From NCBI GenBank assembly GCA_033442325.1, contig JAWQFM010000023.1:1149908-1213907 (forward strand): a DNA stretch of 64,000 nucleotides, written 5' to 3'. A model generated the notes under the pieces. It worked only from the letters and a program-made list of their open reading frames with translations. It was not told the origin of the DNA and ran no database searches. Made by a program: the position numbers and the translations under genes. Position 1 is the stretch's first letter. Every line of letters begins with the position of its first letter. The stretch is from Salpingoeca rosetta (taxonomy: Eukaryota; Protista; Choanoflagellata). Positions 8,545 through 29,609 of the stretch are shown one piece after another.

Positions 8545-11500
8545 TCAAAGGTGCACGCGTCGAATGCGGCGGTTCTGCTGGTCCACAAACACAATTGCGC
8601 GTTCGCCAATGTCGTAGGCGACGCTGACAGGTGAGTGAAGGTTTGTGGCGTTTGGTTCATTGCCATCGCCGTTGAAGCCTCGACTGCCCGTGCCTGCAAG
8701 CACGGTCACCGGAGAATCACCGCCGTCCAAGCTCACAGACCGCAGCACGTGCTTGTTTGTGTCTGCAATGACCAGCATGGTGCCCTTTGCATTGACAGCA
8801 ACGCCTTCAGGGTGGTCCAGATTCGTCTCAAGCGCAGCAGTGGTCGTGCTGCCGTCCACATCACCGCCGTACCGGCCCGTGCCAACCAGTGTGTCGATGA
8901 TTTTGTAGCTGTCCAGATCAACGTAGCGGATGCGGTTGTTGCCCTTGTCAGCTATGTACAAATCACCGGCGCCGCGAACAGCAATGCCTGTGGGCGCGTT
9001 GAGCCACGCGGTTGTGGCTGGGCGGCCGTCACCGTGGTATCCTTTGCGGAAGGGCGTGCCAGCAACGACGTCAATCACAACAGAGCGTCGGTCCACACCG
9101 TACACAACATGGTTCTCCGTGTCGGCGATGTACAGCGTGCCGCGGCTGTCGAACGCAAGGCCGTGCGGGGAGTGGATCTGCGCCGCGCGACTTGAGCCGC
9201 CCATGCCACGATGGCCGGCCTCGCCCGTGCCGACAAACACAGACAGGACGCCCGTGCTTGCGTCCACGACGCTGACACGGTGGTTGCCCTTCTCCGAGAT
9301 GTACACGTTGCCCATGGTGTCGACGGCCACGCACGTGGGGCGGTCCAGCTGCGCAGCTGTGGCCAGGCCGCCAACGCCAGTGGACCCGCGGGTCTTGGTG
9401 CCGGCGATGGTGGTGATGGTGCTGCCGTCACGCGAGATGCTCACGACGCGGTGGCGGATGGCAATGTACGTGGCGCCCGTCACGTCCACGGCAACGCACT
9501 CGGCCTGGTTGAGGCCTGTTGCTGTGGGGTCACTCGACCCCGTCCAGTCCACCAGGCCGTTGCCGGCGATGGTTTCCACAGTGCCGGTCGCCTGTGTGGT
9601 GAACGTGACTTCCGTCGTCGTCGTCACAGCGGTAGCGGTTGAGCGGGTGCTTGCCTCAAAGCACAGGCACACCTGCAAACATTGTGCGTGTGAGTGTGAG
9701 TGTGTGCGCGTATGCGCGCGCGTGTGTGTACATATGTGTGTACATGTGTGTTTTGTGGTGAAATGAGAGGATGCTTTAAGGGCTGCAGTTGTCACGGTGC
9801 TTGTGGTCTGATCCTGGCCGTCGGTGTACCCGCACAGTCATGGCCACACACAAGATCACATCAAGCATACACACATGCACACGCACAACATTACACATTC
9901 AAACCCACACCCACCCACATACACACGCACACAACACGTGACGTACATTGCGGCAGCCCTCGTGCTCCTCGAAGAAAGAGGCGTCCAGTCCTTGTGATGC
10001 ACAATGCGCTGAACAGTCATCCTCTTCTTGAGTAATCTCGAAGCGTTTCCTGCACCCGCACGTGCACACCTGCAATTGACCAAGTTATATGCACACGCGT
10101 TGCACGTGCAGATTGGACGGTGTAAGCAGCATGTGTACATTTGCAGCAATGCTGTGGCGTGGGACGCATGGCCTGCACACCAGCTTCTTCTCTTCTGTGT
10201 TACCGCTGCATGCGACATGAATGCGCGTGAATGTACGTGAATGCACATGAAAGTGTGCACTTTGCGTGTGCGTGAAACCTCACCCGCGTGCAGCCGCCGT
10301 AGGTGGCCATGAAAGTCGAGTCCTCGTTGTTACGCTCACAACGTTCGCGGCACGTGGCCGGATTGAGGGAACGGCTCAGGCCTTCACACGCGTTGACGGT
10401 TGTGGGTGATCCAGTCGTGGAGATGGCTGGAGGTCGAGGAAAGAAACACGGCAAGATGGCAAGACGTGTGAGACTGACGCAACAGAAGTGAAACACGTGA
10501 CACGCCCGCACATGAACTGCGCTGAGGTTGTGATATGATATGATGCAGTCACCATGCATGTAGGAATGCTGGTCACAAGAACATTACAACATGCTGCAGG
10601 ATCGGGCGGATGAGACAACAACAATAAAAGAACATTGTCAACAGTCCTCAACTCACGTTGGCAGGTCTTTGCGACGCCAGACCACTCTGCTCGGCCGTTG
10701 GTGATGGAGCATGTGCGGGACGTGTCGCCAGAGGCGGACAGCTCATACCCATAGTTGCAGCTCTCGTACGTGCACGTGTCACCTGTGCGTTTATGTGTGC
10801 GTTTGGGTGTGTGACTCTAACGTGTGCATGTCACGTTCCCTCCTCACACACATGCACACACACAAAAGGAAGTTGCAGTGAACAGCATTGACGATTACAG
10901 AGATACAAAATCGGCCATGCACGCACGCATAGACGCACACGCACACACGCACGCGCTCATACCTTTAGCGCCAGAGCACGTGCCAGATGTCGCGCCATTT
11001 GTCAGCGTTAGAGCACCGCAGGACAGTTCTGTAGACGGGGTGGTGGCCAAGCAATACGGTTGAGATTGGGGGTGATGTGTGAAATGTTTGCGGGTCACCA
11101 TGAACTACAACTGCCCCTTCTCCTTCCTTATCTCGTCACATTGATTCACATTGTATGTTTCAACTCACGCCTGCACTTGGTTCCTCCAGCGGAGTAGAAG
11201 CCATCCTCCTCGCGACAGCGGACCTGCCAGTGTTCAGACACAACACGACCAGAATGGAAATCAGAACAGATGACAAAAAAGAAAAAACGAGTACGTTCTT
11301 GGCAGACGCGTATGCCACGCGACTCGACGCAGTTCATGCCATCATTGCTCACATACACAAACACAGACGGACACACACAGACAGACACACACACACACAC
11401 ACACACACACACACACACACACAGGTCCAAACAAAGGCAAGACATACGTCGCACACGCGGACTTGGGGAGAAGATGAACCCGTGTTGTAAATGCCTGGAA

Positions 11501-28300: not shown

Positions 28301-29609
28301 CAGCGGACGGGGAGTACTCACCCGGGGACGAGATTGCGTTTGAGTTTGACGAGGACGTGCAGTGCGCAAAGCCGTTCTGGTTTGAGGTGCAGATGACCAT
28401 TGACGGGCTGGACGAAGTGTTTGCGAACGACGACATGGTGATGGTGTGCGAGGGCCGCCGCATCACCATGTCCCTGGTGCGCGGGTTTGCGTGGGATGAC
28501 GTGAGCGGCCGCTCGGCGCGCGTGACTCTGAACAGCGTCCAGGACCCGTACGGCAACGTGGCGTCACAGGAGTTTGTGCTCGAGTTCCAGTTTGCGCTTG
28601 TGGCTGCGGAGGCGCTGACGACACAGCTGACGGGCATCGAGCTACCGCTGCCATTTGAAGACGCGTTTTTCAACACGAAATCGCCCGAGTACCAGAACGT
28701 GACGGCGCGCATTGAGGCAGACATTGCCAACGCCACGGGCATTGTCGTGACACGTGTGCGTGTTGCGTCGCTGGCGCCCACGGACCTGTTTGACTACGAC
28801 GCGGGCATCACGGTGAGCGTGTACCTGCTGCCGGAGGACACGGCCACGCGGCGTCGGCGTCGGCGTGATGGCCTGCCAAGCCTGTCCCCATCGCGCGCTG
28901 CCCAGTTCTTCAACAACATTCTCATCAACGGCACTGCCAACCTTGGCCGCAACAGCCTCTTCTTCAATGTCTCAACCCTCGGGCGGCCAGAGATGATGGT
29001 GCTGACGAGCAACCGCAACGGCAACAGCATTGACACCACGTCCACTACGTCCCAGCCATCAACATCGACTGGGGAGACCGTGGACTCTGGTGCGAGCTCC
29101 AGCAAGCTTGAGAACATGACGGAGCTGAACACAAACCTCTCATGTGAGTGCACTGCGTGTGTGTATGTGTGTGCCTGTGTGCGTGTATGTATGTATGTGT
29201 GTGTTGTGTTGATTGGGTGGTTTGCAAATGTGGTGTTCGTACGATATGGTGTTGATGGTTGATGCGAAACATGATCCTACGAGAGGCATGTGTGAACTCT
29301 GTTGCATCACCTCCAACTCACACGTGCCCTTCAACCTTGTACCCTGCTGTTTGCTACTCTGCATTGCGCTGCTTAGACGCAATCCTCGTGCTGGTGCTAG
29401 TTGTGATTGTCCTTGAGGTGCAGCGCATCGTGTATTCGTTCCGCAAACACACCTACGCGGTCAAAGAGCCACCGATGGTCGTTGCCCACCAAGCACAGGC
29501 AAGCCGGGCCTCCTTCGAGCTCCATGGCGGTCGCAGCACCTCCTCTTATGGCCGCCCTTTCTACGATGACTTTGATGGCGAGACCACGACCACCATGTCT
29601 CACGTGTAA
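19373..29609 (+). CDS. Very large type I membrane protein: signal peptide, dermatopontin-like domain, Sushi, Ca-binding EGF, FN3-like, Thr-rich mucin-like, PAN-like, large intron-poor beta-rich core, SEA-like region, RRRRRR site, TM, short tail ending SHV
   Basis: MLVRVLAVVVACVVSTTLA-ELPFVNEY; DRRWGFEC, DDRVWKIGC and EDRRWRIRTC motifs; Sushi CNSGY..RQC..WSGSAPTC; cbEGF DINEC...CVNDDGSYHCEC. Long exons at 24445-27375 and 27586-29143. The last exon 29377-29609 encodes YAILVLVLVVIVLEV and stops at TAA 29607-29609. Confidence 0.82.
24087..24413. repeat. (GA)n-(GT)n ... (CA)n microsatellites in one intron; representative of dozens of dinucleotide tracts across the window
   Basis: Directly visible: GA ~24087-24120, GT ~24121-24177, CA ~24311-24413. 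Confidence 0.95.

Follow-up and report, generated by a model that had tools for sequence, protein, structure and literature searches.

The 64,000-nucleotide window analyzed here (C23:1149908-1213907 in a Salpingoeca rosetta assembly of 68 contigs and 55.4 Mb) carries two genes that are transcribed away from each other out of a 735-bp spacer. The minus-strand gene, which we call N, encodes a predicted secreted protein with two dermatopontin (DERM) domains, a series of Sushi-like repeats, and an NHL propeller. The plus-strand gene, B, encodes a predicted membrane-anchored protein in which one DERM and one Sushi domain precede an EGF domain and a large ectodomain. The same pair lies at seven loci of the genome and has been copied as a unit. 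The reading that we favor as probable is that this locus, as one of the seven B/N units transcribed outward from a short shared spacer, is a candidate two-part module for attachment or for the matrix (theca). Annotations exist for both gene types, and S. rosetta DERM genes have been published; what we did not find in the literature is the pairing. Throughout, C-numbers denote contigs (C4 holds two of the loci, named C4a and C4b), genome-wide searches cover this assembly, and profile searches on the spliced models were run exon by exon, the scores given being those of single exons (Pfam cutoffs: DERM, PF14704, 28.3 bits; Sushi, PF00084, 20.7; NHL, PF01436, 20; EGF_CA, PF07645, 27).

Domain Layout of the Divergent Pair

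The start codons of N and B lie at 18637 (minus) and 19373 (plus) with exactly 735 bp between them, in agreement with the initial annotation, which had placed two divergent genes around a ~735-bp spacer. Divergent starts within ~1 kb are the criterion of a bidirectional pair, and the distance here, counted from the start codons, lies inside that range. Both first exons encode a signal peptide (B, MLVRVLAVVVACVVSTTLA/ELPF; N, MHGRWSAGAILILVPLLHALIFMRQADA/YVNSN; 19-residue Kyte-Doolittle maxima of 2.3 and 2.1, respectively), and the end of N exon 1, AYVNSN, resembles the AYVNEY or AYVNC found in the N genes at C19, C1, C4a, and C24.

The DERM domains that follow, one in B and two in N, exceed the cutoff in single exons at 54.4, 51.3, 36.3, 37.5, and 55.2 bits, and the genome search re-found the same exons. 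Each domain carries three D-R-x-W motifs (DRRW/DRVW/DRRW in B, DRRW/DRLW/DRRW in N DERM1, and DRRW/DRVY/DREW in N DERM2, where the second is degenerate), with six Cys residues inside the domain and two more in the linker behind it (B, CTLDCDESSGYIEDDTSDWGC; N DERM1, CEVECDLTGDYVNSDVPRVC). All three DERM domains have in common a phase-1 intron within the same Tyr codon, at DERM profile position ~71, and the Sushi-like repeat in both genes is cut by a phase-1 intron inside a Gly codon (g/gc). The Sushi half-domain exons reach 21.8, 20.7, and 22.1 bits (at or over the cutoff), 20.6 bits (just under it), and 18.0 bits. With only half a domain per exon, the individual matches are borderline; the pattern C...C-x-x-G-[YF]...C...W...C, plus an extra Cys pair, is present in every repeat, and InterPro annotation of the sister genes lists Sushi. 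Chance can be discounted because the per-exon Pfam E-values go down to 1e-14 and the intron positions and phases are identical in three DERM domains. Taken together, these features indicate that the heads of B and N are paralogous DERM-Sushi modules with common intron positions. The homology of the two genes is limited to the heads.

The succession of signal peptide, tripartite DRxW domain, Cys linker, and Sushi repeat split at the same Gly had been described for both genes in the initial annotation and is read there again in our models, and the profile check that it proposed places the DERM exons at 36.3-55.2 bits against 28.3 and the Sushi exons at about the cutoff. That description holds for the heads; it missed the second DERM domain of N (16877-15950) and the unrelated remainders of the two genes, an NHL propeller in one and the ectodomain module that we call BIG plus a membrane helix in the other.

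The N gene is intron-rich, as is B, and runs from signal peptide through two DERM domains and about seven Sushi-like repeats to a C-terminal NHL propeller. A second Cys linker follows DERM2, after which come the Sushi-like repeats with the same split Gly; the body exons are collinear with those of the N genes at C24, C12, C4a, and C4b. In the terminal exon, three stretches match Pfam NHL (82.3 bits) and TEN_NHL scores 66.1 bits, and the sister N genes are annotated as six-bladed propellers. Among 25 conserved coding pieces of N, which add up to 1,447 residues, we found no membrane segment: only the signal peptide is hydrophobic enough, and the 3' end has a maximum of 1.14. The B protein consists of a signal peptide, one DERM domain, one Sushi domain, one EGF_CA domain, an ectodomain of ~1,600 residues, one membrane helix, and a short tail. 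The helix in its last exon has a hydropathy of 2.5-3.3; a single C-terminal membrane segment is present in four of four B homologues, from four choanoflagellate species (PTSG_07019 and the proteins of S. infusionum, C. perplexa, and B. monosierra), three of which also display a visible N-terminal signal sequence. The earlier proposal of one secreted and one membrane-anchored product is thus supported, with N predicted to be secreted and B to be a type I membrane-anchored protein.

Seven Copies of the Pair in the Genome

The DERM profile matches 89 exons genome-wide at ~21 loci, of which eight are divergent (minus then plus) and none is convergent. For paralogue comparison, 20 kb was taken around seven other DERM loci. 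Paralogues of the B middle region and of BIG stand on one side of seven of the eight divergent clusters (the window, C19, C12, C4a, C4b, C1, and C24), and 13 of the 14 NHL matches in the genome fall at the 3' end of the opposite-side gene, N, in those same seven loci. Facing signal-peptide exons occur at all seven, with 447-1511 bp between the start codons. For four N genes the NHL end, and for some B genes the 3' end, is known by its location, not by reading. The only NHL match outside the N genes is at C3:250032-250112. The eighth divergent DERM locus (C22:494.9-499.8 kb) is without BIG and NHL and represents another kind of DERM pair.

The pairs are visible in the reference annotation as well, where N and B genes of three of the seven have consecutive GenBank records (EGD77913/EGD77914, EGD80412/EGD80413, and EGD77107/EGD77108). 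The S. rosetta sister pairs PTSG_03008/03009, 07443/07442, 11058/11057, and 09548/09549 belong to the same two families as the window pair and have the same Pfam content, PF14704;PF01436(;PF00084) for one member and PF14704;PF07645 for the other. An OrthoMCL NHL cluster likewise counts seven S. rosetta genes (Fairclough et al. 2013, PMC4054682). The window pair is almost certainly among the annotated records listed above; going by exon number and length, it is probably PTSG_11057/11058 or its twin 07442/07443: these records have 14 and 29 exons and an N length of 1,449 or 1,455 residues, compared with the 1,447 summed above. The initial annotation had assigned the DNA to a probable choanoflagellate, which the identity of one B paralogue with S. 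rosetta PTSG_07019 confirms.

Copying as a Unit

How the two related heads came to face each other had been explained by an inverted duplication. A local event of this kind, in which one DERM-Sushi gene gave rise to both genes here, draws on the shared domain order of the heads, the phase-1 intron after the Tyr of DERM position ~71, and the one, also of phase 1, that splits the Gly codon of the Sushi repeat. Outside the twin locus described below, each head instead finds its best matches in heads of the same gene type elsewhere in the genome. In its third repeat, for example, the B head shares 61% identity with the B gene at C12 and 48% with its own N partner, and for the N linker exon the identity with the N gene at C4a is 75%. 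The same B/N pair is also found at seven loci, and the genes are unrelated downstream of the heads.

Iterated DERM hidden Markov models built from the loci collapsed onto a 56-residue internal repeat, and the DERM trees are therefore treated as repeat-unit trees. In a weak tree of 52 such units (58 columns, with 3 of 46 inner branches starred), the window B and N units never pair; B units stand beside B units and N units beside N units. An approximately unbiased (AU) test on one short repeat unit of 56 columns gives p = 0.29 for a sisterhood of the local B head and N DERM1 and a borderline p = 0.043 for that with DERM2. Local sisterhood is not formally rejected because the unit is too short, and when all B units are kept in one clade, the fit is equal to or better than that of the free tree. 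We regard a local duplication as extremely improbable; the paralogy of the heads and their common intron positions stand, and if the head was ever duplicated in inverted orientation, this can have happened only once, long ago, before the family expanded.

A stronger argument than the DERM-unit tree comes from the congruence of the B and N groupings. The BIG tree (838 columns) recovers {C4b, C24, (C4a, C1)} with 99% support and {C23, C19} with 100%, and C12 falls outside the first clade. The N genes of exactly C4b, C24, C4a, and C1 share a third DERM domain, which forms a 97% clade, and the N DERM2 units of C12, C23, and C19 group together. Since the locus groupings of B and N agree, the B/N split predates the family expansion and the two genes were copied together. 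Multiplication of a single ancestral B/N pair as a whole explains this congruence, and independent inverted duplications do not.

Mosaic Twin Loci

The twin locus on C19 matches window positions 9407-28791 at 93-97% identity, introns included, and the 8 kb beyond the B 3' end have no match on C19. Because the similarity ends at the gene borders, the twin is a bounded segmental copy and not a second haplotype. Within it, window 18396-19368 is unalignable with its 1,544-bp counterpart (C19:934527-936070); this stretch comprises most of N intron 1, N exon 1, and the spacer up to 5 nt before the B ATG. The twin spacer measures 1,341 bp versus 735 bp in the window, and the signal-peptide exons of the twins are only ~75% identical. 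A second twin pair, C1 (~520-526 kb) and C4a (~145-151 kb), is also a mosaic, and for C23/C19 and C1/C4a together we quote an identity of 90-97%, introns included. In C1/C4a, the gene bodies have a synonymous divergence (dS) of 0-0.13, and both DERM-encoding 5' ends and the spacer have a dS of at least 0.65, with a ratio of nonsynonymous to synonymous divergence (dN/dS) of ~0.3 in those DERM exons. The simplest reading of these mosaics is gene conversion of the bodies between older loci that stopped short of the heads.

Diverged heads on nearly identical bodies also invite the reading that the seven copies form a recognition code, with seven cognate secreted/anchored partners of different specificities used for kin, mating, or substrate recognition and not for bulk matrix. 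The seven diverged copies, the high dS of the C1/C4a 5' ends relative to their bodies, and the observation that different pairs peak in different thecate samples are in its favor. The dN/dS of ~0.3 points to purifying and not to diversifying selection, however, and gene conversion of the bodies would account for the mosaic more simply, which together make a recognition code very unlikely in our view.

Expression of Sister Pairs and a Proposed Two-Part Module

In published data, two of three annotated sister pairs are tightly co-expressed (Fairclough et al. 2013, PMC4054682). The sample order, checked against the header of another table in the supplement, is three thecate samples, swimmers, three rosette samples, and chain. 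In fragment counts normalized by kilobase and million reads (FPKM), PTSG_03008 (N) has values of 29/25/37/15/2.3/6.5/17/2.9 and PTSG_03009 (B) has values of 28/28/41/17/2.0/4.2/17/2.5 (PMC4054682), from which we obtain r = 0.99 and an FPKM ratio of 1.06. From the same data, PTSG_07443/07442 correlate at r = 0.96-1.0. All four B genes for which values exist, and all but one of five N genes, peak in thecate samples and have their minimum in colonies, the exception being PTSG_11058. The initial annotation had suggested co-regulation of the two genes and a role in prey capture or colony formation. Co-regulation is plausible from the first two sister pairs and is not borne out by a third (see below); a role in colony formation is contradicted, as expression of the sister B genes and of most N genes is strongest in thecate cells and weakest in rosette and chain colonies.

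Our favored reading joins these observations into a mechanism. The spacer may act as a bidirectional promoter, from which both products would be made together, chiefly in thecate (substrate-attached) cells. The secreted N protein could then partner the anchored B protein outside the cell, for example by binding through the DERM-Sushi heads, so that N and B would constitute a two-part attachment or matrix (theca) module.

Several points weigh against this reading. PTSG_11058/11057 correlate at only r = 0.25, because expression of the N gene PTSG_11058 extends to swimmers and colonies. Correlations of r ~0.8-0.9 are likewise seen between B and N genes that are not partners, because most B and N genes are thecate genes; the partner correlation of PTSG_03008/03009 is closer than any non-partner one, and PTSG_07443 correlates equally well with the non-partner B gene PTSG_11057. 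The expression values are those of sister pairs, the record of the window pair itself being assigned provisionally, from exon counts and lengths. k-mers common to the seven spacers are not above shuffled controls, and no shared motif emerged among these spacers. B can stand alone, as three B-type genes lack an N partner (C7, which is PTSG_07019, C14, and C19 at ~1.22 Mb). Adjacency follows from segmental duplication alone and needs no functional link, and a physical interaction of the N and B products is purely conjectural.

The uncorrelated pair, the spacers without a common motif, and the solitary B-type genes also speak for the alternative that the arrangement is a historical accident, in which segmental duplication multiplied an ancestral neighbor pair whose promoters are independent and whose extracellular roles are unrelated. 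Such duplication, of which the twins C23/C19 and C1/C4a bear the marks in their 90-97% identity, accounts for the adjacency by itself. We consider such an accident possible but on the unlikely side. The pairing has survived among lineages that are only ~45-60% identical in protein, the genome-wide NHL search found no N gene away from a B gene, and in two pairs the expression of the partners correlates at r of 0.96 or more, in one of them at equal (1:1) levels.

A bolder version of the attachment module, which we hold to be distinctly unlikely, is that the seven pairs are cognate: each secreted DERM-Sushi-NHL protein would dock its own anchored DERM protein, the shared promoter would match their dosage, and the set would provide a pre-animal combinatorial system of cell-substrate or cell-matrix adhesion. 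If true, the domains of this adhesion system would be ones that animals later put to use in the extracellular matrix.

Gene Structure and the BIG Ectodomain

The coordinates of both genes are collected in Table 1. The window DNA is GC-rich, intron-rich, and eukaryotic, and many introns contain (CA)n runs. Long (CA)n/(TG)n microsatellites occupy 7788-8500, the spacer, and many introns (e.g., 16930-17030, 19225-19345, and 24080-24420) and yield spurious open reading frames rich in Cys/Val or His/Thr.

Table 1. Features of the N and B Genes in Window Coordinates
Feature	Position	Strand	Details
N 3' end: two conserved exons (10209-10427, 9941-10072), then NHL exon	8545..10427	-	stop codon 8545-8547
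N conserved exons without known family, between Sushi repeats 6 and 7	12291-12389, 11978-12127, 11655-11804, 11152-11226	-	
N body, ~seven Sushi-like repeats, most split in Gly codon	10649..15530	-	Pfam Sushi 21.8, 20.6, 22.1, 18.0 bits; regular-expression search
N Sushi b-exons	15222-15353, 14651-14791, 14061-14213, 13443-13544, 12518-12688, 10649-10792	-	
N Sushi repeat without intron	13052-13252	-	
N DERM2, three exons	16636-16877, 16179-16357, 15950-16011 (15950..16877)	-	Pfam DERM 51.3 + 36.3 bits
N DERM1, four exons	18163-18360, 17919-18019, 17536-17633, 17270-17363 (17270..18360)	-	Pfam DERM 54.4 + 19.1 bits; includes Cys linker
N exon 1: start codon and signal peptide	18539..18637	-	33 codons; donor GTATGA; hydropathy maximum 2.1
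Spacer	18638..19372	.	735 bp; putative bidirectional promoter; (CA)n run ~19225-19345
B signal peptide and DERM, four exons	19373-19528, 19755-19881, 20123-20296, 20526-20648	+	Pfam DERM 14.8, 37.5, 55.2 bits; includes Cys linker
B Sushi-like repeat, split in Gly codon	20864-20929, 21155-21283	+	Pfam Sushi 20.7 bits
B calcium-binding EGF exon	~21470-21593	+	EGF_CA 35.1 bits; exon begins DINEC (D-x-N-E-C type)
B middle region	21804..24228	+	Ser/Thr-rich; Cys-rich module kept in all B paralogues; no Pfam match
B large ectodomain module, BIG (two long exons)	24475 to ~27384, ~27574 to 29146	+	no Pfam family over cutoff
B last exon	29377..29609	+	membrane helix YAILVLVLVVIVL...; ~60-residue cytoplasmic tail; stop codon 29607-29609

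The four conserved exons at 11152-12389 of N match no Pfam family and are 38-60% identical to the N gene at C12; one of them holds ...FTIACAAGQAITGLYY..., which recalls the start of a DERM repeat. In B, joining exons 3 and 4 in frame needs a GC donor at 20297 (CAG/GCACGT), there being no GT donor of the right phase nearby. The middle region of B matches the B genes at C19, C12, C1, C4a, C4b, C24, C7, and C14 by phmmer, and its homologues outside the S. rosetta genome score 22.5-23.2 bits with PAN_1.

A full HMMER search with BIG returned 747 representatives, and the named relatives come from S. rosetta, Barroeca, S. infusionum, Choanoeca, Monosiga, diatoms, a dinoflagellate, and Paulinella. 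An AlphaFold model of BIG based on 33 aligned sequences (predicted local distance difference test score, pLDDT, of 74.7) contains a confident chain of beta-sandwiches over the first ~500 residues, followed by long hairpins and a helical hairpin. A Foldseek search with this model returned only generic stalks (integrin alpha legs, mastigoneme, pilins, and alpha-2-macroglobulin) at template-modeling (TM) scores of ~0.1 and no specific fold, and we read BIG as a tall extracellular beta-rich stalk. Many relatives bear other heads, such as cupin/JmjC in Monosiga and diatoms, and in S. infusionum BIG sits after DERM and PQQ-type propellers; BIG thus appears to be a mobile stalk that is combined with different heads. 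The BIG genes of Monosiga brevicollis (CH991567.1 and CH991553.1) have neighbors without DERM or NHL and have no bearing on the B/N pairing.

The distribution of BIG bears on a proposal made for S. rosetta "DPT/Ca2+ EGF" genes, which have been listed as separate candidates for horizontal gene transfer (Matriano et al. 2021, PMC7971027). In the table of that paper, the NHL part finds its best matches among bacteria (38-44% identity) and the B genes find theirs in diatoms. Against a horizontal origin of the present genes, their exons number ~14 and ~29, their DERM, Sushi, and EGF modules are of eukaryotic type, and no bacterial protein was identified among the relatives of BIG, of which the named ones are protists and the others metagenome contigs. 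Such an origin is quite improbable; it would apply at most to a single domain, long ago, and would not explain the pairing. PMC7971027 makes no mention of head-to-head order, joint duplication, or co-expression, and full-text literature searches returned nothing else on a head-to-head pairing of B and N.

Comparison with Known Systems

Among the modules from which animal matrix and adhesion proteins are built are dermatopontin, Sushi, EGF, and NHL. Here a two-gene unit made from them has been kept through seven duplications, and its sister pairs are expressed together in surface-attached, theca-building cells; a functional link between the B and N genes is one that we infer. S. rosetta can be edited with CRISPR, which makes the pair a testable case of how a unicellular relative of animals organizes a secreted-plus-anchored surface module, and the seven loci are natural replicates for studying bidirectional promoters and gene conversion.

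The closest likeness of the heads is to the DERM proteins themselves, that is, vertebrate DPT, the Limulus haemagglutinin/amoebocyte aggregation factor, and mollusc shell-matrix dermatopontin (PF14704), and it consists of the profile match, the three D-R-x-W repeats, and a position as the N-terminal domain of a secreted or surface protein. The sister gene PTSG_03009 is accordingly named "hemagglutinin amebocyte aggregation factor precursor" by Blast2GO. Animal DERM proteins are small and mostly a single stand-alone domain, whereas here DERM heads proteins of ~1,450 and ~2,300 residues, together with Sushi, EGF, NHL, or a giant stalk and anchor. Vertebrate DPT has ten Cys residues in five disulfides; the window DERM domains have six, plus the two of the linker. 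Membership in the functional class of matrix or agglutinating proteins, which bind matrix components, cells, or carbohydrates, is predicted from the homology of the domain.

Teneurins share with the pair an NHL propeller (TEN_NHL 66 bits), EGF, and a weak carboxypeptidase-regulatory/TTR-like beta-sandwich. In contrast to teneurins, the parts are spread over two genes, the YD-repeat shell and the toxin-like C-terminus are absent, and B is type I and not type II, so that the likeness is a resemblance of parts only.

The genome logic of the B/N pair is that of the collagen IV genes (COL4A1/A2, A3/A4, and A5/A6), in which matrix paralogues lie head-to-head on a short bidirectional promoter and the pair has been multiplied as a unit. 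Collagen IV partners are homologous over their whole length and co-assemble into one trimer, whereas in the S. rosetta pairs homology is confined to the heads, an anchored protein is paired with a soluble one, and their joint assembly is a prediction.

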